A stretch of DNA of 64,000 nt from Botryllus schlosseri. Lineage: Eukaryota. Of the stretch, positions 1 to 37,800 are shown one piece after another. The translations under genes and the position numbers were made by a program. Under the pieces are notes generated by a model. That model was not told where the DNA came from. It searched no databases and saw only the letters and a list, made by a program, of their open reading frames with translations. Position 1 is the first letter of the stretch; every line of letters begins with the position of its first letter. Location of the stretch: assembly GCA_051294905.1 (NCBI GenBank), contig CM119375.1, positions 7,378,001 through 7,442,000 on the forward strand, in the 5' to 3' direction.

Positions 1-942
1 CCTGCGATAACCTAACCGTTGACATCGCTGGCCAACCAATTTCCAACACTAAAAATGCCAAATACCTTGGTGTTTTACTGGATTCGGACATGTCCTGGAA
101 GAGTCACATACAATCACTCAAACCACGACTATCGAAGGTATGTGGTCTCTTTCGCCGCCTTAGCTACATTCTGCCAGTCAGCGTGCTGTTGATACTCTTC
201 AACTCTATATATTCCTATCAAAGTTACAATACGGAATTCTTTGTTGGGGTGCTGCCTGCAAGAATACAATTGACCCACTGCAAAAACTTCAACATCGGAT
301 CATCCGTATCATTGCCAAAGCCCCACGGGGGCCTGGATGTGCAACTGATAAATCGCTTCTCAAAAGATTTGGTGTTCTAAACTTAGAAGATATGAGGAAG
401 CTAGAAATTGCCAAGTTTATGTATTAGTTCCATTGCGGTCAATGTCCCTCAAATTTCAAGGACTACTTCACCTAGGAGACAAAAGCGCACAAGTACAGCA
501 CACGCGCGTCAACGAAGAACAACTATGATCAGGACTGAATACAAGGAAACGCATTGCTCTATCAAGTATGCCGGACCCCAATTGTGGAACAGCATCTCGC
601 CGGCTATCCGACAGTCGTCGAGGATGTCCGCATTCAAGTCGAAGTACAAGCAATTTCTTCTAAATCAATACTAGCCAGTCTTCAGGATTACCGGACCACG
701 ACCTAACATCGACCTCGCCCTCCGCCACATGCCACCCCATTTTGTCGCTTGCGTCTTATATTCTCTGCATTACTTTTCATTCAGTGTGCATGCCTCTTAT
801 TTACTTCGCCTAGGCTAAGGTGGGTGTCTGATCTTAATGGCTACTCCAAGTTGTTTCGAAACCTTCCTATCTTTTCATTGTATCGCAGTCTTGTGATGTT
901 TTGAAACGATGAAAATATTAATAAACCTGATTGATTGATTGA
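1..942 (+). mobile_element. 3' end of a degenerate L2/CR1-group LINE (RT C-terminus, 3' UTR, microsatellite tail)
   Basis: Frameshifted, stop-containing peptide KYLGVLLDSDMSWKSHI..QYGILCWG..YAGPQLWNSISPAIRQS..FKSKYKQFL* (stop 672-674) matches the C-terminus of CR1/L2 ORF2; ends AATAAA (920-925) then TGATTGATTGATTGA (928-942). Confidence 0.85.
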
Positions 943-1775
943 ACTCAACATCAACAGTCAAAACATGATGTTATCCCTTTTCGAACTGTAATCTCTTAGT
1001 GGCGCTAGAGAGCCTACAATAATATGATATAGAGATACTTCAGTACGATGAACCACTCTACTGACTTCTAATCTACGAAATACAACTTGCCAGTAATTAT
1101 GATTTATCCGTCCCTCGATACAGGTATCATTTCCCTTTGTACTACCTCTTCTATTTTATGACCACATGATTTACAGCGAACTGGCGTCTGTGCGGAAGAC
1201 GACGGTGTTGCCATATTATTGCTTCGCAAGGCAAGGATGAGATTAACAAGTACTCAGATAGCTACGAAGGCGTAGTTCAATACAAACGATATATTGTGAC
1301 GGTGCTGAAGTGAAAGAATCAACATCAACAATACAATTGAGCATGCCATGCGTTATGTAGAGGGGGGTTATTCTATCATGGGCGATGCAAGCTAAACACA
1401 AAGCGTGAGATCTCGATTTTTTCTCTTCGCCTTTTTCCTTTTCGGCGAAAGTCTCGCGAACTCGAAAGCTGCGCGATAGAACAGCACTATTATAATTTCC
1501 GGATCAGGAACATTAGTATTCTCGAAGATCTGATGCCGACCGATGTGCAGTTGTGTTATGCAGATTTCTTGTTTCTTAAAGTGGCTCATTATACCTAGAG
1601 CGAAGAAAGTCAGATAGAACGCCATTCTTATTGTTTTTCTCCTGTTTGCGTACTGATTGATATGTTTCACTAGTCAGCATATTTCTTACAAATAGTTCTG
1701 TTAAGTGCTAACCGACTGTTGATGCGACTGCGTATGAAGATTTTATAAGGAGTGTACCCGCACTGGCCTTTAAAA

Positions 1776-1842
1776 ATGGCAACTCATTTTAAGCTATGGA
1801 AATTGATATGGATATGTGTCATGCTGATAGCAACCACGATAG
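1776..1842 (+). CDS. ROR: ROR exon 1 (signal peptide)
   Basis: AAAAATGG start, MATHFKLWKLIWICVMLIATTI + G, donor AG/GTAAGT, phase 1 fits exon 2. Confidence 0.8.
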
Positions 1843-4800
1843 GTAAGTGCCTTGTCTAATGTGACTGTGGGAATCGAATCATATTAATTGTGACTGTGTA
1901 TACCACCGCGACCATTCACGCATCGTTAGCGATGCGCTCTGAAAATTGCCGGCCTAAATTCATTGCCGGCAATAAAGATTCATTTATCGCACCTTTGAAG
2001 TAATTCCATTGTTCGTAATCGTAAATGACCAGCCGCGGTCTGTTTATTGTTTGCGTACTCTGTGCGTGTTCTCCAATCTAAATTTCCCTTGATCCATGCA
2101 ACATTCGGGTGATTGCTAGATAATAGACGAAAAACTTACCGCCATATTGTAGCACTGACTGTAATGATGTGAATACGGATGTTCTTGGTGGCTTATTGGA
2201 ATGATGTATGAAACGCACATCAACTTTGAGAGCATTTAAACTCGAATTTATGGCGAGATACAGTCTAGTATTCGTGATTGTTCAATGTTCATGATACCCA
2301 TGACCTGGCCATGATTACGCCATTGAAAAAGGATTTTCTCATTGCCTGAATCGTATCAGGTCTTTGATGAATAAGTCCTTCCCTGCTCTACCGGCTGCCC
2401 CAAGTATGAATAATAGGTTCCATTTCCCGTAGCCAATCCCATTTTTATCGGCGTGTAATCACATAGCAGTAGACCGTATGTCTTCGAAATGTAACAGACG
2501 GTCACAGCGCTCTGTTTTAATCAATATTAGGGTCGTCATTATTCGCGCCGCCGTGGCGAAAGTTCCATTGTTGCCCAACAATAGTAATAGCGAGCGAAAG
2601 TTTTTCGCGGAGGTCAGATAGGTCACTGAAGGCAAATTAGTCTGCGCGCTATCTGGGAATGCAAACTGCTTAATGAAATGAATAACAAGCAGTGAAATCT
2701 CGTTGGTTGTCGATTGAATCACAGATCATTGAGCACATGCATGAATTACAAACTTTTTAAATGGGGTAATTTATTTGCGAACCACATGCGCATTCTGATT
2801 CCGCATCAGTTCACCTAGGGCGAAAACACGGTCACAAAAGCCCAGACATTGCGGAGATGGAACTTATTTTCCTCGTTCTTTATCTTTCGGCATCTTCAAA
2901 TGGTTTGCCATGGTGGATCAATATCATTGTATTTCACTCCTACCAATGAATTAGCATGAGCAAAACGTTTGGTCATACCTTTACTGAACTAATTACATGT
3001 ATGTGACACTGTGTATGCCATTTGTTTATAACCGTTCGGTGGTGATCTTGGCGCCCGTAGCACGATCGTAATCTATAAAGTAATGCGCTGCTTCATTCAC
3101 GCCGTACATGGCATTCTAAGTTAGCGATCCTGTTTCCCATACCGAGGTTTGGTTGGTTTATCAGCGATTCGTCAGGCGATAGCTTCATGTAGTAGCGTGC
3201 CTCGACGGAATTGCAATCGTATATCGTGAATTCTGATCGCACCGGAAATTCGTGATACCGCGCAGACACTTATCTCCTCGGGTCTTATTTTAATGGTTGT
3301 GGAACCGTGTTGAAAACGTATCAATTTCAACGTTAGATTTTGATACTCCCGATTCCTCTGGTGGTATCACGATTTACATATACCTCGGGCGCGTTTTTAT
3401 TGAAATGACTCTGATTCGGGAGTGTATCCAGCGTTGAAGATGGCGCAACAATTTCAGCAATGCATTCAAATCGCTGCTGCAGATAAATCCACAATGTCCG
3501 AGAATGCGTAAATCTGCCTTAAAAGCTTGTATTCGACTTCACTTGAAATCTGGGAATAATATGGTTTGCATTCAATCCTACAGTACAAATATCTCTACAG
3601 GGTTGGGAGTGTTGCTAAGTTTTCTAGGAAATTCGTGTTAGTCTCCGGCATTGTTTTGCGGACAGTAAATTCAACGAATTCCTGTTGTAAAATTGTTTTC
3701 CCGAGCGCAAGAGGTCAAATACGTATGCTATCTTTATTGCCCGATACTCTTAAATCTCCGAAATAGCTGTTTTCAGCGTTTCGTCTCCTCGTAGGATCAC
3801 ATCGGTGCATGAATTGGTCATATGGAACGAACCGTGAAATCTTGCGACTTCTTGGCCGTGATTACTAACGTGATACTGATTGATCAGTATGATCACTATC
3901 AGTTAGCTACAATAAAATCGAATGCATTATTGCCCAACGCAAGATGAATAGGATATTCTCGAGTTATCCCGCAAGGACAGTATTCGCTTTTACCTTGAGA
4001 AACAAACACCGCACAGTGCTGAAACAAATTCTTCATGAAATTGGCGGTATGCGGTACGAACAATGAACATGCGTATTGTGTATTGCCACGATTAGCGCCT
4101 AACCAATTTACTAGCTTGGCTTTAGCGCAATAGCCACGCGCACGTTGATGACGGATTAGTCGGCAGGCCGTGGCAATTTCGCCAAACTTTGATGTGACAT
4201 AAGTGCAAATTTCAGTACGTCCAGCCAGTCTATAATGCGTATGTGAATGACGCCGATATTGTAGGTTCAGTATAGCTGCCGTGCCGAGATTGTTGCAGTC
4301 GTTAACACATGCGCCGCGGCACGCATGGGTTCTACTTTCACGGCGGATATCACGCTTATAGTAGCCAAGTATATGTAGGTAAAAGGTATACATCTCGCCG
4401 TAGATGTATTTCTTTAAACATTACTTGGAAAGGTCGCGACTTGGGGTACAGTAAAGTATTCCGACATTTGAGATTTACCAATTATCAACTTTTTTCACAA
4501 TTTCAACTCATTCGATTCAATTCATATTTCACCTTTGCATATGCCAGCAAAACGATGACGATTTGATGGACAGAAATATGCGTGTATCGTCCCAATTGGT
4601 AGTATATCCAACACTAACCGGAGATGAGCGAATTTATTAATTTCAAATCCGATTCCGGAATTACGATACGAATCCAAGTACCAATTCGGTGATGACTGAA
4701 ACTGACGACTGAGATCGTACGAAAGTTGGGAATTATCAAACACTCCATATTGAAATACAAATCAAATTCGTACTCAGAAACTTCGTTGGTACGAATCCAA

Positions 4801-7800
4801 TCAAAACTCGACCAAAATCTTCACATTCGTCGAGTCCATGCTCATTGCTCATCTCTGATACTGTTCAAGATGCCATCACCGCACTGCTGCCATACCCAAC
4901 TGCTTATATTTGCGGAGCATGATTTCCCTGTCTTCTCAAAAGATAGTTATTTACCCATGATTAGTCTAACATACTTTTCCTCATTGTAGATTGGGTGCTA
5001 GAACTGGTTAGTCATGTAATAGGGGTGCGAACAGGGAAAAATGAGGAACCACTGCTCTATAGATATCAAATGCATTGTAGGTATTTTCGTAGCGACTATG
5101 AACGATGTTGTGAAAGCGATAGCAGCAAACCACCTCATCTGTTATCCTACCTGACAGATATGTTGAAAGTATTTTTGCAGGGTCTATTTCTATTTTGTTG
5201 TTTTTGGAGATACATACCTTGGAGCATTGAAAGTGTCCTCTTCACTTTTACGCCTCAGGATATATAATAGTAGTAGTAGTATACAGTATCGTAGTGACGT
5301 AGGGAAATACTCAAACACATATCTTGCACTGTACGTTGTATAATTTACATATAGGTTGTGTATATATGTATGAATCTGAGATTGTGAGTGAGTAAACAAT
5401 TTAAATAGTACTATATTTTCTATGTATTTTCGCATATATTGTCCGAAAAATTCATCTAGTAAGCAATGAAATTAGCTCAACCCCCATTATTTCCCTAACC
5501 AAACCTATGATACAAAAGTGTGATTAATATACGATGAACATCTTGAAAAGATACACAAGCTCCCGGTGCTGGTTCACAATGCTGCCGTTGGTTGAGTCAT
5601 GTAATGTCGGCACTGATCGGGCTTGATTTACTGTCCTTTAGTGCCGGTGTTATGCTCGGATTTCGGCTGTATTCTCAGCTTTCAATCTTGGCGACAGGCT
5701 AGTCATAGTGGCATAAATCTCTCCAGCATTACATTTGATCAAAGGTATCCTGATCGTGATTCGCGTCGCAATACAAATATCACGAAATGGCATGTTCAAA
5801 CAATAGGAAATTGCTTTTTAAATCATAATTTTCGTTACCATCCCATTCATCAATTCGTCTACTATAACTTACGAGAATCTTTCACACAGATAGTGAAATA
5901 GGGCCTTCAGTCAACGTGTTATTTGCGATGCGTCAACACGCCTGATAGTGTTCGTTCAAAACTAGGGCTCGGCTACCGATGAGTTTTGATGTGGTTCTTT
6001 CCGCAAATGGATTTTGTCAAGATATTTGACGTATCCGTGCGGTGTATATATTATTGCACGCGCCGCAAGCAGCTTCCCAAGCCGTCCTTCTCGCTGTAAT
6101 AAAGTCCAGTTTATACTGTCATGATCGTCTTACTAACACGCGATACTGAGCATGAGCAATGAGCATTAGTATTCTACGTTGGTTTGATACCCTGGTGACC
6201 CAGTAGGCTCACAGCAGTTTGTCTTGATGTATCGAAATGGCCGTTTCTCCTATTAAATTCCAGATTCTGAATTTATGCTACGTCATCGAGTTTGAAGTCG
6301 TGAAGCTTGAATTTCTTTGTCTCGCAACGAACTTTTGATACCTCCCTATTTTCCTTATAGGATTTACAGTAGATAATTAGGCTAATAGCTTTCAAAATGT
6401 ACCTGCCCCCGTTGGCTGTTTAGGTATTCAATGGTGTGTATGGGCGGTTGCAGTTTCAGTCTTCTATCTTTGTCCTGTGGAAAGATCAGCTGAACCTTGA
6501 ATGACTCGCATTGATTATTATGTATATGACACCATGTCCATCAACTTGACCACAGGCTTCTACTCCCATTCGAACCAATTACAATGTTTTTTATACGAGT
6601 TCAATTGACAGTGAAAGATCTCGGCGAACTCTCGACACATGTATATCACTGCAATTTCGCCGTTTTCTCAGGGCCTCGAATCTTCTCGCAGCGAGGACAT
6701 TTTTAATTGGGCAATGCAAATATCAGATTTGGGCTGTGTAATACAATTAGCTATTTGGCAATCGGGCGACTGAGTCTGCGTGGCGCTGTACGTTTTCGTC
6801 CGCTATGCTGTTTGGACGACCACACGTATTCGATTTTACAGCGGATAAGAACATACCTGCCACGGCCGCGTTGATTTATATCGAATCTTCTGTTAGATGT
6901 GCGTAACGATTACGATCGTAAATAATTATTCTTTCGACGAATCGAATCTCTATCTTCCTCAAATGGTGTTCGTCTATGTATAAATCAGCTCGCTGCGTCT
7001 TAACTTTTCAAACACAAATTACGTTATCATATTTACTTGGTGAATAATAATAAAAGTGACTGAAAGCAAACATTGGACGCGTTAGAATACGAATATGGAA
7101 CTTGTCGCAAAGGATGGATTGTAAAATTTGAAAGGACATGGGGGACTTGGTCAGTTAATATTGTATTTTGTGATGCCGCCACACCGCAAACGAATATGGA
7201 TCTATCTTCACGACCCACAAACTGAAGCAATAGATATGCTGTTTTGTACCCATGAACAATTCTGACTGAACCGACGTACCGAACGTGGTAGTAAACACGT
7301 ATCAAATTGTGCCGTTACTCTGTAGTTTCTAGTAGCGACCGAGATCACTACCATGAATGATATTGAGTGACTCTCTGTCGTTCTTAGCATCTTTCCCGTG
7401 TTATCCCGTGATCTATTGACTCCTTCAACAACTCTGTCGCAAGGGCGCTCTAATTTTTCTGAAAAGGCTATCTAGATTCTTTTCTTCTATATTGCTTTGA
7501 CCCGAGATGTAATCTAGCGCACTTCGACTAAGATGCTGCGGTAATTATTCGATTAAATATCTCGATATCTGCCCTCTGCCTTGTAACTCCGACTTTGATA
7601 AGTGGATCCCGCAGTTAGATCATGGTAAAACTATAGTCGCTGAAATGCCTTGTGTTGAATGTTGACGTATACCTTGAGACGTACGTGAAATATTGATTCT
7701 CGATTCTGGTTGAGAGTACATACTAATTCCAAAATATATTCACATTGAAATAAACCCGAATATTTTCGCTTGACACTTGGTTGGGGTAATCGTCAGCACT

Positions 7801-10800
7801 TATAATAGAGAATTGGAAATAATTATGCACATCAACAATCCTATCAATAATTGTTGATATACAGTGTTTTTTTCACTTCTCTACTAGTTGCCGACGATTA
7901 CCCCTGACGAGTGCAGTTTTAGGCAATTGGAAAGAACATTGTACTACTAGTTACTGACTATTAAGCTACCGGTACCGCTGACGAGTGTCGGCGGGCAATA
8001 TCCGGGTTTATTTCAATATGAATTTATTAATCGTATATTGAAGTTCTGTTACTCTGAGAATCTCATAAAATCAAAAAGGTCATTTTGTATGCGTCGTCAT
8101 GTACGGAATCAGCCAAACCGATTGCGACGGTGTCCGGTCAATACCGAGAAAACCATTACCGAGAATGGACACCACATAGAATGGTCATTACCGAGAATGC
8201 AATGTATGCAATGCAGGCATGTTATGCACATGTACAGGTCGTGTGTATGTGCATCACGGCTTTGCCACATTCAGTATCGATTCTCAGATATAAATTTTTC
8301 GACAACGTCGTCTCAGTAAGTTAGATTCTTGTCATTGGCCATTCTCGGTAAGGTCCATTCTCGGTGGTGACCATTCTCTGTAATGTCCAGTCTCGGTAAT
8401 GCTTTTCTGGGTATTGGTATAGAACCAATTGTAACATGCCAGAAAACAGCATTCCCAAAACCGAATTCACAATCATTGGCTTACTGCGAAGGACTAGAAA
8501 TTGCTGGATTTCCAATTCGAACACAGAATCGTGACGCCACACCGTTGCTGTGGCGACCAACTCCCAAATGCTTGTCTTCACGCCTTGTTCACCGTAATTG
8601 CAGCACTCGCAGCGCGACTTTGTTCGTCCGCTTGAACTTAATCGAAATTGGAACCGGCGACAGATATCAATTTTCCGGAGATAGACATCCAGCCAAACCG
8701 ATACCAGCGCTCGAAGCAATTTGTACCTCGCGGCTCGCGGGAAAGTGGTTCTGTTTCGTCAAGGCGGTGTTTCATTACCTTAATTTAGCGCTGAACATCA
8801 CCTGCGATACTCCACAGCGGGTCGCCGTCGTATGTAATCAGGTGCCCGTCAAGGCAGCGCTACACGGAACACTCGTACGCGGACTTTGATAAATGGGATT
8901 TCGCTGTGTGCTTTCGCGACCGAACAATGTACAGTGTATTAAAAGCAACTCTATATACTTGAATATTTGACGGCTGGCAAATTCATTTGGTCTCGGCGAA
9001 AGATGTCCTCCCGACCTTTGAGTTAATGAAAGGCAAATTACTATATGATCAATGTGACGCGACGCATGTATGAGTAGAGACCAGCACCAGACCATTATAA
9101 CTACAATAATTTCAGATTTTTTAATTAGACTTGAATTAGAATTATATCAACACATTCTTTTGCAAATTAGATTGAAATTAGAATTATAGCTACATAGTTT
9201 TTTTTTAATTAAATTAGAATTGGAATTACTGAATTCGCAAAAACATGTACATTGAATCATATATATCATAGTTCGATCTCATTAGCATGAGAATAGCAAA
9301 TTTCTGTACGGCAAGCATCCATCGTTAGGCACCATACAGTTCTGCTGCAGCATTTACAGGAAAAGCAGGAGTTCGACTAGAATTAAAATTAATGCATAGA
9401 AACATTTCGCAACTTACATTAGAATTAGAGCAAAGAGCTGAAGAAAAAGTTCACAAATTAGATTACCCGTACTTCGAGTTAATTATTCTAATTAGGGAGC
9501 TAGTATTATCTAATCAAACTACGCGTTGTAAGCCGATTCTCAGTTTTTCGCGGCTTGAATTCAAACGGTGAAATTTACAACATAGTTGACTAATAATCCG
9601 TTGAATTCACATCGCAAACTCGGTGTCAAATGCGACGAAGACTATCAACACCGTTGGCCGACTTCACATACTGGTGCCATCTTCCCGAAACTATACCCTG
9701 GTGTTGCGCAGAACGTTTTTTGTACTAAATAGTCCGTAGCGTTGAGTCACTGGTGGCCGGTTACTAATACTTGTGGAGTATGTACTAGCGGAGATAATGA
9801 CTTCGAAAGATCAGTCCGCGGGTCTATTATCTCATAATGCTCCCGTGGGTATCAAACGGGGTTCCACGACATGGTTATCCTTCCGCGTTTGACCAGTGAC
9901 ACCCATCCTTATTTCTCAAATTGTTACGAATAACTTGAACTCTTTTTAGGTAAGAGTGCATCAGTCGACATCGATGTCACCACCGCATCCAGCAAGACCG
10001 ACGACGATTACGGGTAAGTTAAACATGTTACGAGAATTCTATTTAATCTCCAGTCAATTGTAATATCCTTATGCCAATAAGCTCAAGGGCTTGTAAAGAA
10101 AACGCTAAGCTTACGGGCTTGGCGTTATGCCCCTTTATCCCCTCGAAATATGCCCGGTGCGAGTTAAACAAATCTCGTCCACCGCACACGAATATGCCTA
10201 CCACTTTCAGCTAAGCCCTCAAATATTTTTCTAGAATGCTGGTCGTAATCCCTTTGTAATTGAGTCATGGCTAGTTTACTTTTTGAAAATGCTTGTACGG
10301 CCTGTCGTTACGGTTATTTATCGGACAATGCGACGGCTCAGAGTGTAGCGTAAGCCTCTCCAACATTAGCGGGATTCTGATTTGAAAATACACCACTGGT
10401 AATAGTGGTGAATCATCGACACTTTCATCGACTTATGGCACTGTAGTTCTATAGAAGTCCCCCTGCGGAGCGGATTTGTGATTTGATGCCACAAATTTTC
10501 GCTAGGCACCACGGTTGTTGGAGGGGACCGGGACACAGGCGAACACCATCAAAATTCGGCCAGGTGCAGACCCATCCTATCGTTGAGTGTTCTGTCCTGT
10601 CGTATAATATGTATAGCCTATTTGTTTCGAGGCGTGCAAGGACTTAGAATGTTCATTATCCGTCCATGCTACACCTTCTGCTGCTATAAGCGGCCCGAAT
10701 GGCAGTATGGTATAAAACGGTATCTTCACGATCAAGGAACACTCAACTGATCATATTATTCATGTGTATGTTGCGCGATATGATAGTATTCCCATGAAAG

Positions 10801-13800
10801 AGCAACAAGGTGGTTCAACTTCCCACTTTTTGTCGGGACTTAACAGTAGGAACATAAAACTTGAACAGTTGTCATTGGCCTCCTGTAAGACCATACAACG
10901 AAGACAGGCCCGTGTGATTTTCACGGCCTCGCGTATCGTGATCAGAGCCCGACCGATATTGGATTTCTGAGCCGATACCGATAAGGCCGATATCCAGTAC
11001 CTCCACCGATAACTTCGATATATTCAGCCGATATTCAAAATATATGGAATCTAGCTCAAGGCACATATTTAACACCTCAGAGCATTTTTTTCAACAATTT
11101 TACAGCCATTGATATGTTTGAACGTGAAATAAATGATCTAGGGGCTATAAAAATTTATCAAAAGCACCAATCCAGCAGTTGCAGATTACAGTTCACGAAG
11201 CACAATTTCTCGGCTCTTTCTCCAAGGAGTGAACTTCTGTGGTGGTCTTTCATAAATGATGTATATAGTACTAAACACAGTGAGTAGTCTTTCACTTGGT
11301 ACCATAGCTAGTGGCACAACAAGAATTGGAAATCTTTCTTCATTTCGGTTCCACTGCTCCCTTGCATGGGATCTTTCCTTCAATGGTTTCACGAAATATT
11401 GATATTCTTCTGGCAGTGCACCTGGAGCCTTCAGCACATCATTAACAAATAGCTGAAGAGAATGTTGAAAACAACTCAAATTGTCCATGTCTGCAAATGC
11501 TCCACCCATCATCCTTGGGCGGTTGGGCCTTGACCATGACCAGCATTTCAACAATCAATTGATCAATATTTTACTCTCTTTTGTCAGAATTGGCCAATGT
11601 CATCATGGAATCAAAAATTTTCGTATCTATTATTGGCTTCACTCCACCTTTGCTTGATTTTCTTGCCCTCTATGCTCGCATATTTCCTATCATGGTGGCC
11701 CCGCCGGCCTCAATCAGGCGACTTCATACACAGTATGATTAGCTCTGTTGGTACCGAACCAATAGCACTATCTTCAGAGAAACGTTTCGGCGCGACGCTT
11801 TTCCCTGTCATCACGAGGGTCAGTCCAGCATGATTGAAGTTGTCATTTCTCTTACTGATTGAAATCTTCTGCAGACAACTATCCATCCAGCTGATCTCTG
11901 TCTTTGGTGATCGATTATTGCAGGGGATTCCCACGAAGTCAGTGGGGCATAACGGTGATTAGTTATCTACAATATTTTTCAGATAGGCACGCCTACTGCC
12001 CTGTATGCATTATGCACTATATGCAGCTTGGCCATTCATTTTTATAATTTACTGTCCTCACGTCTTCTATCGACTTCTCCGTCTCCCTGCCACCATGTTG
12101 TGACGTCACGAAAATGACCGATATTTTTTTACCTTCAATGGCCGATACCGATATTTCTCTCCAAGCGTGATATCGACTCGATATTATCGGCGAGCCGATA
12201 ATCGGTCGGGCTCTAATCGTGATAGTGCGGTCGAGAGCACTAAGTTCGAGACGCTGTAACAACTGGTTTATGCATGACACAGGCTTGAAACTGAAACCGC
12301 GTCGGCGAAGCAATTTACACTGAATTTCAGATCAAAGCTTCCATCGTACCCGCCAATTTTGTCGCATATCTGTTTATAACATCAAATTGCCACGGCCGAA
12401 CCGATGTATAGAGCAGTGGTTCTCAACCTTTTTTTTCAGTTTGCGGGTCGGTAAAATTTTGAAACTGATTTTGCGGACCGGTGGGGTGAACCATCAGAAA
12501 TCAGAATTAATCCAGAATTTATCTATGACAAATGTATGAAATATGAATCTCGAAGTAAATGCTGCACTGCGGGGACTGGACTGCGGGACTGCGGGGACTG
12601 ATGAGAAATTTACTGCTGTCCTTTTGATATTACGCCTGTTATAATGGTTGTTCGGATTATTTTGGTTGCTCTGACTTGCTGTTTGCTAGCCCCTGTTATG
12701 CTGCCTAATCTCGTCAACCTTCCGTATTGTGACGTACGCCAAGTCCAAAGTAGATCATGAACTCTATATTGTATTGCGACATCGCGAAGAAAAATACATT
12801 ACAAATTTCTAAAACAGTTTCAAATTTTATGTTTCCCTTATTAATGGACAAGCGTCAAACTTCCTTCATTTTGCAATTGAGGCACGAAATTGTAATACAT
12901 TTATTCGTACTTGCACAGACCGCTGAGAACCACTGATCTAGAACATGTGCGACTCGTTCGTGTGACGAAACGTAACTATGGGCCTCTTATGACATTTCGA
13001 AATCATGTACCATATGTTATACATTCTTTCACTTAAGCGAAACTCAAGTATTTAGGTATACATACTTGAAATGTGCATATTCTCTTAGCGTCATAAATTC
13101 TAACATTCTTGCAGTAAATTATCGTGGGAATTTTCATCGAGCGCCAATCGCAGTATGACCTGGGTCAGATAGATGAATTATGAATGCCATATTTCTTTTC
13201 TATTTAACGATAAACACCTTCATTACAAAGCCTTGCATCGAGGTGTATGTGAAGATATGCCCTGTTTCAACTGTGCGCGTTGGGGTCAAGTGCAGAGGTT
13301 GCCAAAACCTGTCTGCATAACGAGAGTTAGTCGCGTAGCGTACCCTTCGCGTCGTAGCGGGGCCGGAAATCGTATCGTACTTGGGTAATGTTTCTATGGT
13401 CTTCGTGTGGGCTCTGTAAAGGGCGCGGGTTCAAGTTACCGGAGCGTTGCGGGGTTATTTGGTAAACGTACACGGATCCCTATGTTGTCGTTAAAAGGCC
13501 CAGGCTTGAACGTATCGTATGTGCCTGGTGTGAAGTTTTATTGACGCAAATTCTTCCTTCAATAAGTTTTCAAGTCCTTGAAGCCTTTGAACATAAGTCA
13601 CAGTACTATACCACAACTTGCGACTTTAAAAACTCACGTACAACAAAACTCAGCAGATTTCATTTGTACAACTTTTGTTCCAGGGATATATAGAACTCTA
13701 TATATCTCTGTTTTGTTCGTACGGCTTTTGAGATTTAACGCATATGTGTTTCTGTTTCAGTGACTCGGATTTGGCAGACGGTAAGTGTTGGTTATCTTGT

Positions 13801-25800: not shown

Positions 25801-28800
25801 ATTGAATCAACATTTTTTATTCACCCCATCAAAGTGTAAGGTTGTCTATAGAAGCGATGTTCATTAAATTTGACTCAATTCCAACCAGTGGAAGCCGTCG
25901 AAAACCTTGGAAATTAATATAATAGTATTAACGGCATGGCCAATTCTTTAATTATTTATGATAGTTGTGCCCACCGTAAATACTATTTTATTCGAATCCG
26001 AATTTTTCGACGGCAATAACTCGGCTTTCACTGGTTGGAATTGGGTCAAATTCGGTGAATATCGTTTGCACTGTCTGTACAGGTTCAATTGCGTTCGGTA
26101 ATGTCCTTTCATGTGTGCATTGCAACCGAATAAACCTCCCTGTTGTCGGTTTCACGCGCACTGCACATGTCCGCGTTAATGTCTCTTTACTAAACCAGTC
26201 TTTAAGATTTACGATTCGGTAACTTGTTATTCACCGCAATGCGCCCCAGTTCTCAGCTATATCTCGCGATAAAACCTCGCGTAGACCTTTCGGGGTTACA
26301 CAACGCGTTTCGTTTCGGCTGAACGCAACATTTAGCGTATTGTGTTATTTGACGCGTCTACTGATAAATAGCGCAAAGCACGTTAGCTCATTGCTTACAG
26401 CAGATTTACTGCGAGTGACACAAGGGGGTGATTGTGTGATTTTGGGTCTTCTGATTCTCACATATGATACCCCGATCGTTACGGAGCACGGTGCTATCGT
26501 AGACCCTTATCATTGCAAATTTCCCTATTCACAACATTCGGTAACACCAGGTCGAAACTTGAGTGCGTGGTGTATGGAATTATAGTTACGGGGTGCTTGC
26601 TTCAGAGTCTTGAACTTGAGTTAGGAGTAAGTAAGGTCGGTGTGTACATTCCGTCACCCGATTCGGAATAAATGTAGCTGAATGGCATCTTTCTAACTGT
26701 CACAGTATAAATTCTGATGGGAATATGCAATTCACATCACGTACACATAAGTCAGTTTCTTACGCTTTTAGACGCACATTTGACTGTGATATTGTATCTA
26801 TCTATTCCAAGAGAGACCTGATTATACATCATTTCCCACATTGTTATTTTTAGAGATACAAGATCTACAACTAGACGAGGAGATGCGTGACCAGCATCTG
26901 CAATCGTCGGACAGGTTGCAGTTCCGCTGTCGCGTCAGCGTGTCTCCGAAAAAGGAGTTGACGTTTACCTGGTAGGACTACGTTAGTTCCTCAATGCTAA
27001 GTTTCTGTGGTAAAGCTGTGGTTTTCCACAAGTGGAAATTTGCGGGCTGCAAAATATTTTCAGCAATAGGATGACTTCAGACGTACCAAACGGGTACGGC
27101 AGCGCAATGTCGAATCACAAAATTAAAGGCAGCATGTTCTCCCATCAATGCGCTGTATAAGTCATAAGTTCGCAAAAAACATTGTCATTACATAAGATTC
27201 GCTTTGTGTGGCAATTAGTTCGCTGGTAAATAATCCAAAACAGCCTCTCCGTGTAATCCAATGTTGAGTTTCGCTTCATTTCATTCAACGAAATATAAGC
27301 CCCATGCGCCAGTCTACTTAGCCTGGGAGCGAAAAGATTATGCATATACATTATACATGCTTATTTACAGTTACGCTACACGACTTTACGCCTAATGCTA
27401 TAAAGGCGCCGCGATTGTGCTTGGATAGAAAAAGTGATGGTAATTTCGACTATTCGTTCTGCAAAAAAGTGTGTGACACTAGATGCATCTAGATTCGAGA
27501 TAATTACTTCAATAGGACTGAGGTCTTTATTGCATTGCAGTTCGGGCCTGGTTGTAGGCAAGGGCTAAAAGTTAGTAACATATCGACCTGGTCGGGTTTC
27601 CTACCTAGTTTGATATCGAACAGTATTAATAACTAGCTTCTAATACGAATGCCCGAGGCCAATTCAACTTTGCCCGCCCTTTTGACATTCCAAAAACAAA
27701 AGCTATTCCGCCAATCGGCTACCTTTTGCGGGCTATCCACGACGTGATACACAGTACAGATTGCCACCGTGTCAAATCAACGTCGTTATCGCCCAGGCAG
27801 CATTAATCGACGCGATCTTGTTTCTGGTCGGCCGGAAAATTCGCTATAGGTTGCACAATCGGGCGTAATGAGGATCGCGGTTTGTGCTGTAAGCAATTAC
27901 CGGACCGCTTTGTGAATGAATGAGTAATTCTTTTGAATAGTGGCGTCACAGTTACTATGTTCTGTTTTGAGTCGCGCCGTGCTACTGCATGTTTTGAGCT
28001 CGCTACTCTTCGGGCAGATTAGAAGCATTTCCGATGTGACCCAAAACTGGAATCTTCACGAAAAACGAAATATTGAAACTATTTAACGCTAAACGCTGAT
28101 GCCACAAGAAGGTCGACTTGAAACACACAGATGGGAAGGGGAAATTGTGCCAAATCGGGATGTCGTTTAAATCTACGATCCGGAAGAAAAATCCCAACAA
28201 ATAATGGTGTAGGTTACTCTTTTCGCGCAAAGGGTGGTATGTTGAAGCGTGTCCGAATCCATGCGTAGAAGTAGGGTCGAACATGGGCCATGTCAAATTC
28301 CAATTTTGTTATTAATTTATTTGGACATGATTGAACGTAATGATGGTGAGTTCGAATGGGGTCATAAGTAATGACAAACCGAGAACGTCTGCTAGCTACG
28401 TTCAATACACAAAACCGTAGGTAGAACAATTCAATAATTTCAGTCCTCATAGAATGACAACGAAAGGGGAAGCACCCTGAATAGAATTTTGCTGCCGACG
28501 TCAGCATTCCTGTGTTTGCGACACTTAGAGTAATTAATGTTTCGCTCTAATATAACTTCGTATGGACATTTGGTCCTCTTGATTCATATATCGAGCTGAA
28601 TATACCTGCTAACAATTTGAGCTCCTTTGTCCTATATTCCCAAATTCCAAGTCATACGGTTTTCTTCACGAAGCAAAATATGATTCCCAGGTACCACGAG
28701 AATAGCAAGGTGGACCAGGACAGTGACAACAGAATATCCATCAAGACGAGAGACTGGGGCTCTCGCTTGCAGATCTTGAACGTGTACTCCACGGACGGCG

Positions 28801-31800
28801 GCATGTATCGATGCGAGGCGTCCGACGGAGAGAAAAGCGTGCACACGGAGGCCACTCTCAAAGTGTCATTCAGTGAGTTCGCATGTTTAGGAAGTATTAG
28901 GTAGGGATGGTGTGAACTAGAGGTTCACGTTCGCGTTCTGTGTGTGAACCTCGGAAATTTAGAGGTTCACGTTCACAAACGAGCCTTGGTAGGTTCTGCA
29001 CTGTGAACCTTTGTCATATATTGTAATTTCCACTTCATTATAAGATCTTTCGTTAAATGTTATAGCATTACAACTACGGGCCGTTATATGCATGACGCTG
29101 GCAGCATAAAAATCAACACTAAACGAGCATGCACCTTGAAAATCAAAAAAAATTACTTACGTTGTTACGCAAGTTTGCTCGAATATTTAGTGACTCCCTG
29201 TTGTGAGCTTGACCCGCAATCACACAACATCAAGAGCGAAATACACTACATGTAGGTAGTCAGCGAATGATGCTTACTTAACCAATCAACCATAAAAACC
29301 GAATCCGTGCGATTGGGGTGTTGGCTACTGCTGTATAACTTGTTAATTGGGTAATATCGTTTACAAATATGGAAACCCGTTTAACACTTCGCTCAACATC
29401 AACGTGGCAACACTCAGACGCCGAATACATTGTCCGGTCTGGCCTGGACTGTTAAGGCGTAATCTTATATTTCCTTGGAAGTCCCTGTCGAAACTGTAGG
29501 CAAAGCGACGGAAGATGTTGACTTTATGGGATTATTATATCATTTGATTGCCTCAGTTGATACATTTGGCGACGTTCAAAACGTCAATATGTACTTCAGC
29601 ATTGTGGAATTATGTGGGCCGGGACGTCGCTAGGTATCGTGTACATTAATATAGGCTATCACCTCACTAAAATGTAGGGTATGAATTAGCAATATGACGT
29701 CAAGTGACGTCATGAGGTTCACGTTCGCGTTCACACAGAACCTTTCAAAAAGGTTCGCGTTCACACGAACCAGAACCTTTCAGAGGTTCACACCATCCCT
29801 AGTTTAGGCACATAGTTGGCCAGTTACGAAGTAGCTCTACTTTTTAGTAGTCATTAAGGTTTTGCCTGATTGTACTACTTATATGTTTTTTTACTCCACA
29901 TGTACTTAACAGTTTAAGACAAAGCTATACATGCCCTTGAATTTTGTAGAGTAGATCAAAAACTAAGGACTCCTAAAATCTCTCAGCAGTTTAACTGCGA
30001 AATTTGTATACTGACGACGAAAAAAGTCACCACTTTCACCCAGCCGTAACTGCCTACCTGACTGTTCACGGAATATTTGGGAAGCTGATTTGCTAAGAAA
30101 AAAAGTTATCATTTTCGCCCAATCGTAGTCACGACCCCGTTGACATCTGGTCTAGTTGAATTCTTCGATAGTGTAACTATTTGGAGCTGTAGTGGAGACT
30201 GAAAATGGACACAACGCAAAAATCAGGAGCAATGTAGATGTTGTTATATATAACACACATTGAAATATGTCAGATTTTATACATACGGGCCATATTCTGT
30301 GGCATTCTATGTTATTATAGTCATTACTCATTAAGTGATGTGAAATCGAATGTGTAAAATTTATTCTCGAGATAGATTTTATACACTTTATCAACGCCTA
30401 TGTGTCGTAAAGCGATTCGTCTAAATTGCCCGTCGCTTACAAAATACTTGGTCCGAAGGACAGGGTCAAGCGATCGCCCACTTGTATATCCATCATTTTG
30501 AACAATCGCCAAACTTTTCCGTACCCCACCCTTCACATCCGAAGCCAGAAAGTTCTGTGTTTTCACCGAGAATAATAACATTGTTTGATTGTTAGGCGTG
30601 CTATAGGCTGCCGTTTACTATTATCGTGACAAGCCCAGTTTGACGGTGTCCCGCTGAGTTTGAACAGTCGCTTGTTTCGTTGTGTGATTGATATCGCGCT
30701 TCGCACGCGGCGTGGAGAGCTTCGAACGTGCTGGAATTTGGCGTATTTTTCCGAAGTGTAACCTTCGCCAGCGTGTCACCTGTTCCCGAATTTTCTGGTA
30801 GGCTTTGGTGTAGGTTTAGTCGCTATCAGCAACATACATAAACTGTGTGACCTGTGACGTAGTAAGTTGACTATTCTTTACCGGATACTACCGGTAGATC
30901 AAGAGCACCGAAAACTTCCCTAATGGCACGTTTTGTGATAGGTATGGCTTAGCCATGGACAATTTCTCTCAACCCTTGTAACCTTAATATGTACTTTTGT
31001 CGATGTAGTGCCAATTTTGCTGAAAAATCATTTTGGGACAACATTTACCGTACGATGTAGACATGGAATATATCACCGCACCAAGGTATAAAATCGGAAG
31101 TGACGATGCATGTCGGTATTTCAATGTGGCGTCACAATGATACCCGAATGGCCACCATAGTCTGCAAAGTATGTGCTGCGAATCTTGTTCGGATTTTGGA
31201 AAAGAACTGTTTAAATATTTAAAATCGGGCATGCATTGTTGCATACTAATATACGCTACTTAAAAACGCGCTAACTGCTTCAATAGCAAATAAACATATG
31301 TAGGATGCAGTGATGAATGATCTAAACGCCGAAAAATGATATTCATCGACGATCCACCTCGTGATTTTTTGGTGTGTTGTGGCAGTAACTATGTAGCAAA
31401 ATACAGCTTTCTCATATCAATTCATATTGTATCAGTATTAGTCCGCATAACGGAATATCGTTATAAATTTAACCGTACTATTTACACTCCGCGCCGTCGT
31501 TTAAACCGTATATATTGGTTAATCCATCTGGAAGCAATAAATCAAGCAATTATTTTGCAGAACAAGAACAGTTACATATTTAGGAAACGAACCGTTTTTC
31601 AAAATGCTGTTTATCACAAAAATAGATGAGGTGTGGCCATCTGCTGCCCAATCCTATTCAATGACCAGTAGAAAAGAAATCAAAATCATAATATTTTACT
31701 GTTGTTTGCATCTTCATGGCTAAATGTGAACATGGCTATTCTGTGTTGATTGGAATTAAAACTTATAACCAGGGTTGCCATACCGTCCTTATTTCTAAGA

Positions 31801-34800
31801 TTTGTCCTTATTTTGAAGGGCTACGTCTTAGAAAACTCAACTGTCCTTATTTCTAAGAAATGTCCTTATTTTGGACTTGCGTCCTTATTTTGTCTTATTT
31901 TCAACCACTACAGAACTTTGATCGTTTCCCCTAGTATTTGTGTTGCATAATATTCATAAATTATGCTTTTGCGTCGAGATTCTATGACATCATAAAGGAA
32001 AGGAACTCTCGTGACGTACACACCATAAAATTTGACTTATAAGTGGTGAGATAGCTCGGGCCGTGAGTGGTTTCGTCTGTGCCAAGCTACCACGGCGGAC
32101 GTCATTTTAGCAGTAAACAGCAGTACCAGGTTCCTGCTGTTTGGTCTACAGCAGGATAAGCTCAAGCTGTCGGGAAGGCAGCATTTATTGCGTAGTGAAA
32201 AAAGGCGCAGTGCAGTCGACACATTGGTTAAAAAGTAGTAAATCTATTAATTATTGATAAATTTTTCTAAATTATATTGCACTTGCGCACATAGTTTTAG
32301 CTACTAATAAGGTTAAATCTGACTAGTTAAAATGAGCAGGCGTAAAAACGTTTTTCGTGACAATTATGAGAGAGAATTCAAAGGTATCTAACGAAGTTTG
32401 AAGGACGAGTGTTTCGCACATAGCAATATCTGCAATTGTGACATTAGCCTTGGAGGCCATAGGAACGACCGCTATTTCAACTCACATTGACACCCCAAAA
32501 CACAAGTAGTGTGTCATAATGATTAATTTGAGCCAGTCGAAAAATAATTTTTCCACAAGTCGATCAGCACCAACGACCACAGACGACGAGGCAGTTACTG
32601 CAGAGGGTAACTGGGCACTACATACCGTCAAACACCAGCAATCATTCCTCACCAATGATTGCACATCGCAATTGTTCAAAGCAATATTCCCCGATTCAAA
32701 CATCGCAAATAAGTTTTATTCTAAACATGGTGTACGGCCTTTTTCCATCTTGGTTGACGCCTCTAATCACAACGAGGTGAAAATTTTGGTTTATCACCCT
32801 ATGGGGAGGGGGGGGGCAAGACCAACGTTTTTTGGGAAGGGGGGCTGACGAAGTGCTGATTCGGCCCTGAGTAAAGGTAAATCTAGACATTAGCTCTTGT
32901 GAGATCCATCAAGCACTTTCTAATAACAAGGAGTTGCTGGAGCAGGTTGTTGCTGGCGAAAAGTATGGGATGTGGTATGCCACGGCTCGTATAAATACAA
33001 AGTATGTTCAAAAACGTGTTTTCATGCTAATCTAATTTTTCGACTGTCCTTATTTTTGGGTCTATGTCGATGGCAACCCTGCTTATAACGATAGCGATTG
33101 CTCGGAATTGACAGCATGCGGGTATCTTTATCAACAACGCAACCTTGCTTCAGTCGTAATGTTGGGATAAAAGATGGCATTAAACGTGAACCAATATCTC
33201 TTCTATTGTAATTGCTCTGCGTGCGTTCGCCAATTCTTCTAGTGTGCTACAAGCTCAAAAGTATGGGAGCCATCTACCCTGGGCGTTTCTGGAGAAATCT
33301 CAATCGTGTTTGCTATTCTGTCGATCGCGCGATGTAATTCGCTGTTCCTTTTCCGCTAAATCCCGGAAATACACCAGAATTCGTTTTATCTGTAGTAGCG
33401 AGGTCACAAATTACTGTGATTAAGTGTGCGAGTGGTTATTACGCGCGCTGCCATAAGAACGCAAAATGTCCGGAAGGTAGGCGACGGAAAGCAAATAATT
33501 ACAGTCGATATATCGCCGATACTGTGACTAACGCGTAACTTATAAATTCTCTGAGTGAAGGCCTACCTTTAATTGCGTAAATGTATACGTTATGTTGCGA
33601 AACAAAACAACACACAAGCTATCTTCAAGCTGTCACTCGTGATGGAAGGTAGTATTCCCTGCTTTAGGTTATGTGCTTGTAATGACATGAAATAGATATA
33701 TCACAAGTCATGTACGAAGTCAACGAAGACAGTATTATGGTGCAAGAATGTGCTTATTAGCGGGCTAATGGCGATATCTAATAGTCTAATGTAGACGATT
33801 CTTGAAACCCAGCATATCGTCCTGCAAGTACGCATCAGACCACGGGCTACGGTATTCGTTCTTACTGTACTGTACAATGCACAAATTGAACATAGTTACA
33901 GATACTTCATATTGTTGCTTCATTCACTAAAATATTTTTGACTGACATTTCGAATTTGATTCACCGTATTACTGACATCCGCTGCTGATGAGAGTCTGCC
34001 GAAAAGCTTTTAGTGAAGAATCTGAAGATACTACCAATATCTAGTTATTGCTTCATGTAATTCTGATGTTTTGTACCCCAAATGGCTTGTTTAAATTGGA
34101 CGTACATGACCTCCCTCAAAACAGCATCGTAAAAGGCAATAAATTTACCATTGTCTCGAAGTTTGTTCACTGTTCAGCGAACCGTGTAGACGGAATGATC
34201 TTGTAATCATTTTCGGTTGCCCCAGATTAACTCTTCGCTCTTCACCGATTCTGGTCACGTTTCCAGGATTGGATGAGTATGAGTACACAAGACTGCCTGA
34301 TCGGTTCATGAGTCTTTTGTTTTACCAAAATATACGCTATTACTAACAATCGCTGACGTCCGAAAGTATGAAGTTGTTACACCAGGGTGCTGCCTCTATA
34401 CTGTGTATGCTACTTTGAAGCAAAAACTGCTATTTCATAACGCCAGTTTAAATAATTCATTCGTAACTTTGTGATGCCGTTGGCTTATGGAGGAGCATCA
34501 TTGTAAGTAGAGTATGGTCGACTTGGTCGTCTATGACTTTTCCCGAAATTTCTGACAGAAGACGTTGCTAAAGTGTCGGACATTTACCCGTTTTGTTTCA
34601 GAACGGATAGCGTCACAGTCCCAATACGAGGTCACAAAGTCATAAATCCCTTTCAATTTGTCATAGTCCGGTTTTTCGTTTTTCGTATGCTGTGATACGA
34701 CATATCGAGGTTTGCAGCCTTCCGCAGTGGAAAATACTATCGAACCTATCATTTTCGTTGATAAATTATCTCTTAGTGGCAAGGTGCAGCAATCGAATCA

Positions 34801-37800
34801 TTGTCCCCAGCCGTACTGATGACTGCACTGATGTGTCACGCGAGCCAACACCCACTAAACCGCTGACCTGTTACTCGTGTTGTATTAGGCGTTAAACGTT
34901 CCAATTTAATTAACCGATACAACCGCAAACACACATCTGTCAAATTGTCGACAGCTTTCACCTCCACCGACGACGGCCATCTCCCGGGAGCCGTGCCGTA
35001 TCGCATCGAAAAATGCGCCAGTCTCGTGGAAATTTAGGGCGCCTGCTGCAGCAGCTGTCGTTGTAGAATGTAGAGTCCCTGCAAGCCACACTATTGAACT
35101 ATGACTGCGATGGTGTCTGAGGCGAATGATATTGCGATGAGTCAAGTCGTATTGGATTTCGCGACTCGCGCATGCGTAATCGTGATTGCAGTAGTTGTAG
35201 TCTCTTGCGATGTGATTGTTGCAGCCTACTGGTGTTACTTTCCATGAATTTCCCGTCAATTATAACAGGGCGGTCTGATGACAATTTAGGAATGCCTTTA
35301 TCTCAAGTGTTTTCAAATATCTGATTTCCTCACTGTGTTGGGAGTTGTCTTATCCAACAGTCCAACGTTAGTGATGTTGACATACTAAGGTCAAAGCGGC
35401 AGGCAAATCGTGATATTCAGAAAGAAATGGCCAAAACTACATCCGTCACAGTAATGACTTTCGTATAAATATGAAGTCACACTCATATTAGCCCAAGTCC
35501 ATTCCGGGCCACTCCGAAATTGACACTGGTCTAGAACCTCTGTCCTATATACGTGGAAAAGGATCTTACTTACTCTCTTATGGCACTTTGGAAATGGGCA
35601 TTATAAAGAACCTCTCGTTATAGGTAAGGTAATTTACCAACGCACGTCTACGGTCATTAGTATTAGATACACTTGACGCCATTACGCATGTATCCTATAT
35701 ACGCTGCACACAACGAAGCATATTTTCTGGCATTCTGTCGCATACGATATTGCTCGCTGGACACGTCACTGCACGTTAATATCTTGTGGCAGAGTCTTTT
35801 AGCGGTCCTTTCATCATGGTGGGGAGGGCTACAATTTCCAGCCTCTATATGTTGCTTTTAGACGGATCCACTTTTCAACGCGGCTTCATAGAACATCAAA
35901 TCATTGTACTGCATAATTTAGGCGATGGGATAAGGGAATGTAATGCGGTCATTTTTTGATCAAACGAGAATGCCGCTCCTTCACGCGAAGTCTTGCGTAT
36001 TTCCATTAAGAAGGGGATGGTGTGAGTAAGACACGGAACATCCATCAAGGTCATTAAGCATTAATTAATGCGGAGTGTAGAATAATTTATATTGTAAACA
36101 GTACCGGATTAACTTACCTATAACTTGAAAATTGGACAAGTGGTGACTGATATTCATGAATATCGTATGCGATGCGTTCATCAGTTTTAACGTTTAAGCT
36201 CTCGTGCGCCAGGTTGATTGTACGTCCGGGCCTGCCTGGGGAATATGCGAGTACAATGAAATATTGATGATGCAGTACTATCGACATTCGCTATTGTTTC
36301 TAAATGCATTGGCGCATACAGTACTATAGCATACATATGTTAGCCTCGAATCTGGATCTTCCGTTGAAAAACTTCATGATTCGTTACGTGTTCGCTACAT
36401 CTCCAATGTCAGGGATGTGAAATAATAATCCATGCTGGTGTCAATAGTCTGACTAATATTTAAAACACTGCACGGCGAATGCAGATGAATACTGAACAAA
36501 TGGGGCACGGCGGACTGGTCTGTTCGAAGTATCCCTTGGTTATCAACACTGCTGCATTATTTCCAAATTAATCGGCGTGGTGATGTCCCGATTATTATTC
36601 AAACGGATTGTTGATCGCAGGCAACTATAGTTAATTCCAGTTGCTTATTAAGACTAATTAGAGCGAAACATCGGTAGTTCCAATGCTAATCTAATTAGTG
36701 AAATGCTTCTTTGCTCTAAAGTTAATTCAAATGCTAATTTCTGGTTTTCCTGAAATTGCTACATACTGTGTATAGTGCGAAACGAGTCAAGCTTGCTGTA
36801 CAGAATTTGCTACTGTCGGGCTTACGAGAATTAACTCTAATTGGAACTAAACTTCATTCAATGCGCAAGTTTTCGCGAATTCAGTAATTCTAATTTTCAT
36901 CTACTTCGAAAATAAACTGAGTAGCTATAATTCTAATTCTAATCTAATCCGGAAAAGTGTGGTTAGAATTATAATTCTAGACTTGTTTGGAAACACTGTG
37001 CAGTTATAATTTTAATTCTAATCGAATTTGGAAAAGCTGAAATATTCTCGGCTGGCCCTAAAAGTATTGATACAATCTTCCTGCCATATTGTCCAGTGTA
37101 TCTGACAGTGCCGCGCAGATGTTATCCGAACAAGCCTCCCTGTGTAAATGTTTACAATAACATTAGCGCGTTTCTAAAGCCCTTCAGCTGCCGTAAATGT
37201 GTTCACGAATCACAAAATTAACAGAATAAAACCCAACCAAAAACTCTTTCGACCACGGCGTAACGTGAATCACCTCTGAATAATGATGGTTCAGTTACTG
37301 TTGATTACTCGTTGATTTGCTATTTACCGTAACAACAACAGGTAAATCTCCGATTGATAAGCATCACAAATGATTGTCAGGCGTCTATATTGTCTTGAAA
37401 TACGACTTCGGAACATGAAAACCAACACGTTCATTGGTGACGGGTGTTTTTTTGCGTAATCCAACTGAAGAGGTCGAACTTCCACGTGAATTAGACTGTG
37501 GCACTGGACGGGTACGTAATGTAGATTAGAGCCCGACCGATTATCGGTTTGCCGATAATATCGAGTCGATATTACACTTTGAAAGAATTATCGGTATCGG
37601 CCATTGAAGCTGATAAAATATCGGCTATTTTCATGACGTCACAACATGATGGTAGGAAGTCGGTGAACTATAATTCTTGACCGCTAGACTTGGAATATTG
37701 CTATATTTCGTACAGCTTACACTTTCAAAGTGCCCAGATGCATCCTTTCTAGTCTATTTCATGTTCAAGTATGACAATGGCTGTAAAGTTGTTGAAATAA

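Follow-up and report, generated by a model that had tools for sequence, protein, structure and literature searches.

A donor-like start in exon 2 of a Botryllus schlosseri ROR-family gene: a putative recursive-splicing exon that is probably spliced as an ordinary coding exon

The second coding exon of a predicted ROR-family receptor kinase gene of Botryllus schlosseri opens with a donor-like sequence directly behind its acceptor, forming the motif TAG/GTAAGA (9947–9955, forward strand). The same nine letters are rebuilt when exon 1 is joined, because exon 1 also ends in TAG. Since the rebuilt junction scores above the 10th percentile of real donors, exon 2 falls, by its sequence, under the formal definition of a putative recursive-splicing exon (RS-exon; PMC6224609). 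It is probably an ordinary, normally included coding exon that carries a donor-like start by chance. Two features count against this reading, namely the strength of the rebuilt site and the length of intron 1 (8.1 kb), which is long for the gene. All positions refer to the window, the whole 64,000 nt stretch of contig CM119375.1 that was analysed.

The gene and its 5′ exons

Downstream ORF pieces of the window gave family matches to I-set Ig, Fz, Kringle and Tyr-kinase domains, in that order, and this domain order (Ig-Fz-Kringle-Tyr kinase) marks the predicted ascidian gene as a member of the ROR family of receptor kinases. In a whole-library search with the kinase ORF, the best full-length match was a protein of 1179 aa, 83% identical in the kinase and named ROR1-like by its source (Styela clava), and further top matches were Clavelina and Ciona proteins. 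No B. schlosseri protein was among the matches to the full-length Styela protein, and no relative was found among metagenome contigs queried with the Ig exon. The exon 2 site is single-copy in the 495.5 Mb assembly, which ruled out a second haplotype copy in which polymorphism at the site might have been seen.

Exon 1 (coding part 1776–1842, forward strand, as are all features of the gene given here) starts with the ATG at 1776 and ends in ATAG at 1842, in phase 1, with the donor GTAAGT. It codes for the signal peptide MATHFKLWKLIWICVMLIATTI and contributes the first base of a Gly codon, and it is homologous to exon 1 of S. clava, with an identical phase. Intron 1 is 8,107 nt long and ranks third by length among the introns mapped in the gene (56 nt to 13,073 nt). 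Its 3′ end (9930–9949) reads ATAACTTGAACTCTTTTTAG; the acceptor (...AACTCTTTTTAG, ending at 9949) has a short pyrimidine tract and is of average strength, ranking at the 57th percentile among 69 acceptors of ascidian ROR genes. Exon 2 (9950–10013, 64 nt) opens with GTAAGAGTGC and encodes (G)KSASVDIDVTTASSKTDDDY(G), an acidic linker behind the signal peptide; its own donor is ACGG/GTAAGT (10014–10019). Exon 3 (13761–13780) is a 20-nt microexon encoding (G)DSDLAD, with the donor ACG/GTAAGT, and exon 4 (26854–26971, 118 nt) is entered in phase 1 and holds the start of the Ig domain. Joined, exons 1, 2, 3 and 4 form an open frame that reads the signal peptide, then G-KSASVDIDVTTASSKTDDDYGDSDLAD-E, and onward into the Ig domain.

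Exact spliced mapping of the annotated S. clava protein on its genomic locus (L001) gave exons of 82/67/20/118/182 nt, against 67 (coding part)/64/20/118/182 nt in the window, with equal phases. The exon 2 peptides of the two genes align as well (..SASVDIDVTTASS.. with ..SSPVDEDLTTTAA..). Since the exon plan, the phases and the aligned peptide all match the S. clava gene, exon 2 is, as predicted from these comparisons, a homologous coding exon and not a cryptic one. The annotated S. clava protein (XP_039260764) includes both exon 2 and exon 3, and the mRNA contig of a second Styela-like species has residues equivalent to the two exons. No isoform without exons 2 and 3 was found among the database matches.

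An acid-flanked tyrosine lies at the end of exon 2 (TDDDYGDSD, 9998–10013 and 13761–13780), and Styela has ASDYEELDDD at the aligned place. Acid-flanked tyrosines are the usual context of tyrosine sulfation, and a predicted context of this type would argue for a conserved function of exon 2. Spliced-leader trans-splicing onto 9950 was also considered, and was dropped because the only ATG of exon 2 is out of frame.

Several further features of the gene and its relatives were recorded. In Styela (L001 24183–24219) and Clavelina (L003 8606–8642), a 37-nt microexon lies between the Ig and Fz exons; a search between these exons in the window (28873–40987, forward strand) gave no convincing counterpart. 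A frame-keeping alternative is extension of the Ig exon to a candidate donor, TAG/GTAGGG, at 28900, which reads ..SFSEFACLGSIR/NAFKGKC. The intron between two kinase exons at 45353–45697 (forward strand) measures 345 nt, which is divisible by three, and lacks an in-frame stop, so that the ORF 44922–45836 reads through it; the chance of such a stop-free, frame-neutral intron is estimated at about 0.1% in random sequence of this composition. If retained, it would add 115 residues immediately ahead of the WMAPE motif, and the orthologous Styela intron is 248 nt. Clavelina carries two ROR paralogues tail to tail, less than 2 kb apart (L003 17536–17956, reverse strand), and no second ROR gene was found in the 15 kb downstream of the gene in the window. 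Two apparent sources of isoforms were rejected: the Ciona 'isoform X2' (P0167) is a paralogue of P0170 rather than its isoform, and isoforms X1 and X2 of the Clavelina ROR paralogue differ only in the cytoplasmic tail and not at the N-terminus.

Strength and expected frequency of the rebuilt donor

The stretch at 9940–9955 reads CTCTTTTTAG/GTAAGA, and contains both a pyrimidine tract and YAG/GTAAG. The initial annotation had reported an acceptor followed immediately by a donor-like sequence, and this is exact in letters and coordinates, with the intron ending at 9949 and GTAAGA running from 9950. Its statement that splicing of exon 1 to 9950 regenerates ATAG/GTAAGA was likewise borne out; from −4 to +6, the last position is the only one at which the regenerated site and the exon 1 donor are unlike. 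The GTAAG follows from the codons, because the phase-1 intron splits a Gly codon and a Lys codon comes next: it consists of the last two bases of the split Gly codon (G/GT) and the Lys codon AAG.

Donors were scored with a PWM made from the 69 real donors mapped in four ascidian ROR genes (the window gene, S. clava L001, the Clavelina orthologue L003 and the Ciona paralogue L005). This matrix is small and home-made, being neither MaxEntScan nor genome-wide, and the 10th percentile of real donors in it is 5.24. U1 duplex energies were obtained by pairing each site with the conserved 5′ end of U1. The rebuilt exon 1/exon 2 junction (TAG/GTAAGA) has a PWM score of 10.05, at the 84th percentile of real donors, and a U1 energy of −9.4 kcal/mol. 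The corresponding values are 9.91 and −11.4 kcal/mol for the own donor of exon 2 (CGG/GTAAGT), and 11.64 and −11.6 kcal/mol for the exon 1 donor (TAG/GTAAGT). Among the 69 junctions of the four ascidian ROR genes, the rebuilt site alone scores like a good donor, and only one other junction is clearly above the 10th percentile of real donors. Judged by its letters, the rebuilt site is a credible donor, level with the exon 2 donor by PWM and weaker by U1 pairing. On these sequence proxies (a PWM tie and weaker U1 pairing), it does not outcompete the exon 2 donor 64 nt downstream.

Putative RS-exons were defined by Blazquez et al. (2018, PMC6224609) as exons that recreate, at the junction with the preceding exon, a 5′ splice site with a score beyond the 10th percentile of canonical donors. 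The RS-exon signature that had been proposed for exon 2 holds in this sense, as the rebuilt junction is donor-like and the exon fits the definition. In humans, 3.6% of exons (6,837) are putative RS-exons, and 93.8% of these are constitutive; the share is alike across all deuterostomes surveyed, Ciona intestinalis included (PMC6224609). Because a donor-consensus start is found in a few percent of deuterostome exons, most of them silent, the motif alone is weak evidence for recursive splicing. By its sequence, exon 2 joins a known, mostly silent class.

YAGGTAAG occurs four times in the window against an expectation of 2.42 ± 1.56, and 22 of 100 shuffles reach four, so the motif is not beyond chance in the window. 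Among ascidian ROR exons, 20 of 69 (about 29%) start with GT, leaving only the AAG that follows as special, and a GTAAG start is found in exon 2 only. By base composition, AAG would follow GT in about 2% of cases. From these two figures, a GTAAG start is estimated to be expected in about 0.5% of exons, or hundreds per genome.

A second juxtaposed acceptor and donor-like motif, CTCTCGTTATAG/GTAAGGTA, is found at 35610–35632 (forward strand), deep in the 12.1-kb intron after the Ig exon (28873–40987), with a predicted U1 energy of −9.9 kcal/mol. The motif may be a candidate ratchet point within the intron, or it may have arisen by chance.

Conservation of the motif and reading frame

The corresponding junction reads AAAG/GCTTTG in the S. 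clava genome (L001), AAAG/GACTT in the second Styela-like species (mRNA contig L002), CAAG/GTTCGT in the Clavelina orthologue (L003) and GCAG/GCATTC in the Ciona paralogue (L005). None of the four has GTAAG at the start of exon 2. The initial annotation had itself named conservation of AGGTAAG in orthologues as one of the points on which its proposal could fail, and the motif is absent from all four relatives compared. All of these genes retain the split Gly codon that follows the signal-peptide exon; the Lys is not conserved, the other genes having Phe, Leu, Ser and Ile.

As the initial annotation had stated, loss of exon 2 alone (64 nt) shifts the frame, with a stop in exon 4; loss of exon 3 alone also gives a premature stop in exon 4. 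Its further statement that loss of exons 2 and 3 together (84 nt) keeps the frame was confirmed, since exon 4 is entered in phase 1 and exon 1 can be joined to it in frame; G23 then becomes E, and 28 residues are gone. The two small exons sum to a multiple of three in four of four genes (64+20, 67+20, 100+32 and 61+38), and the loss of both keeps the frame because of conserved phase-1 introns on both flanks. From these gene structures, the frame-neutral module of exons 2 and 3 is an ancestral property and does not point to a designed switch. The rebuilt donor would reach the acceptor of exon 3 before any other, and the exon 1–exon 3 product is out of frame.

Alternative readings and comparison with known systems

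The AG at the end of exon 1, once joined to GTAAG, rebuilds a donor-like site. If exon 2 is an ordinary coding exon, it would normally be included, as are most members of the putative RS-exon class. Its own donor, 64 nt downstream and at least equal in U1 pairing, would favour inclusion. By analogy with vertebrates, the exon junction complex (EJC) deposited after the first splice may mask the rebuilt site. Occasional use of that site would then yield an exon 1–exon 3 RNA with a premature stop, cleared by NMD as noise rather than produced by a designed switch.

In published work on the class, the EJC masks the rebuilt 5′ splice site, and EJC loss or very strong rebuilt sites lead to skipping via true recursive splicing; in vertebrates, strong rebuilt sites are the most prone to use (PMC6224609). 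Which outcome prevails depends on how the rebuilt donor competes with the exon's own donor (Joseph et al. 2021, PMC8605326), and skipping of an RS-exon requires that the rebuilt site beats the downstream donor (PMC6224609, PMC8605326). In a loosely matched literature search on recursive splicing in Ciona, ascidians or tunicates, none of the ten best-ranked papers contained the term itself.

Of the described systems, the deuterostome putative RS-exons (PMC6224609) are like exon 2 in being coding exons of the deuterostome lineage, and in having a rebuilt 5′ splice site in the range of canonical donors and strong splice sites of their own; Ciona was among the species in which the class was counted. 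That class was scored by MaxEntScan, whereas exon 2 was scored by a small, home-made PWM (69 donors). The Drosophila Ubx exons m1 and m2 (Hatton et al. 1998, as described in PMC8605326) are also short (51 nt, against 64 nt), follow a long intron, have a donor consensus directly behind the acceptor, and have their outcome set by donor competition, as that of exon 2 would be. According to the same account, the Ubx exons are singly frame-neutral and their recursive splicing was shown experimentally, while ROR exon 2 is not frame-neutral and is a prediction from genomic DNA. Ratchet points and cryptic RS-exons (Burnette 2005; Duff 2015; Sibley 2015; Joseph 2018, as cited in PMC8605326) share with it the arrangement (Y)n-YAG/GTAAG and a second donor less than 100 nt downstream. 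As described there, cryptic RS-exons are non-coding, with a poorly conserved interior and an ultraconserved motif, and are almost fully removed, the ratchet donor being the stronger one; ROR exon 2, in contrast, is a coding exon with a counterpart in related genes, and its own donor at least matches the rebuilt one. The motifs of Drosophila intronic ratchet points were likewise reported to be ultraconserved (PMC8605326), and that of ROR exon 2 is not conserved.

A working recursive splice site, with the rebuilt TAG/GTAAGA used in a regulated share of transcripts to remove exon 2, with or without microexon 3, is unlikely. It would yield either an in-frame ROR whose signal peptide is no longer followed by the 28 acidic residues, or an RNA that is frameshifted and degraded by NMD. 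The high rank of the site among real donors and its PWM tie with the exon 2 donor speak for such use, as do the position of the motif next to an intron of 8.1 kb and a donor 64 nt further on, an arrangement known from RS-exons, the preserved frame on loss of exons 2 and 3, and the existence of physiological recursive splicing of annotated exons in humans (PMC6224609). These points are met by the lack of the motif in both Styela species, Clavelina and the Ciona paralogue, by U1 pairing weaker than that of the exon 2 donor, and by the position of exon 3 as the nearest acceptor, which gives an out-of-frame product. All four genes share the frame-neutrality of exons 2 and 3, an ancestral trait that does not depend on recursive splicing, and about 94% of putative RS-exons are constitutive (PMC6224609). 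A switch between ROR forms or towards NMD, as raised in the initial annotation, found no support, given an unconserved GTAAG without dominance over the exon 2 donor, an ancestral frame-neutrality of exons 2 and 3, and an RS-exon class that is overwhelmingly constitutive. A regulated recursive switch keeps some probability, mainly on account of a rebuilt site of unusual strength for the gene family.

Skipping of exon 2, with or without exon 3, could also result from a failure of exon definition, the GTAAG having no role. Such an ordinary cassette would fit an exon 2 acceptor that is only average, with a short pyrimidine tract, a 20-nt exon 3 (microexons are often regulated), and the frame-neutrality of the module of exons 2 and 3 in all four ascidian ROR genes compared. 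It is very unlikely, because exons 2 and 3 both have near-perfect donors (GTAAGT), S. clava XP_039260764 and the second Styela-like mRNA contain the residues of both exons, and the database matches included no isoform lacking them. An error of the gene model at this place, such that 9950 is not a used acceptor, would be consistent with searches of transcript-derived protein fragments, in which residues 1–260 of the Styela protein gave no match in B. schlosseri or close relatives, and the Ig-exon ORF of the window gave no candidate. The model agrees with the annotated S. clava gene, however, in exon count, in phases, in its exons of 20 nt and 118 nt and in the similarity of the peptide, and the frame of exons 1-2-3-4 is open and continues into the Ig domain, which makes such an error extremely unlikely. 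Inclusion of exon 2 as an ordinary coding exon is the reading preferred here.

The most far-reaching possibility, a decidedly unlikely one, is that exon 2 of this styelid-type ROR gene gained its strong rebuilt donor in one lineage, and that the site acts as a real recursive-splicing switch, taking out exons 2 and 3 in frame or directing the RNA to NMD. The 28 residues that such a switch would remove are acidic and contain a predicted sulfotyrosine-like DDDY site just behind the signal peptide. If this were true, recursive splicing would be shown in a tunicate for the first time, and the gene would exemplify how such a switch arises from a synonymous-level change. Use of the rebuilt donor would adjust how much of a Wnt co-receptor-type kinase is made, or which N-terminus it carries, and would extend recursive splicing of coding exons to the tunicates.
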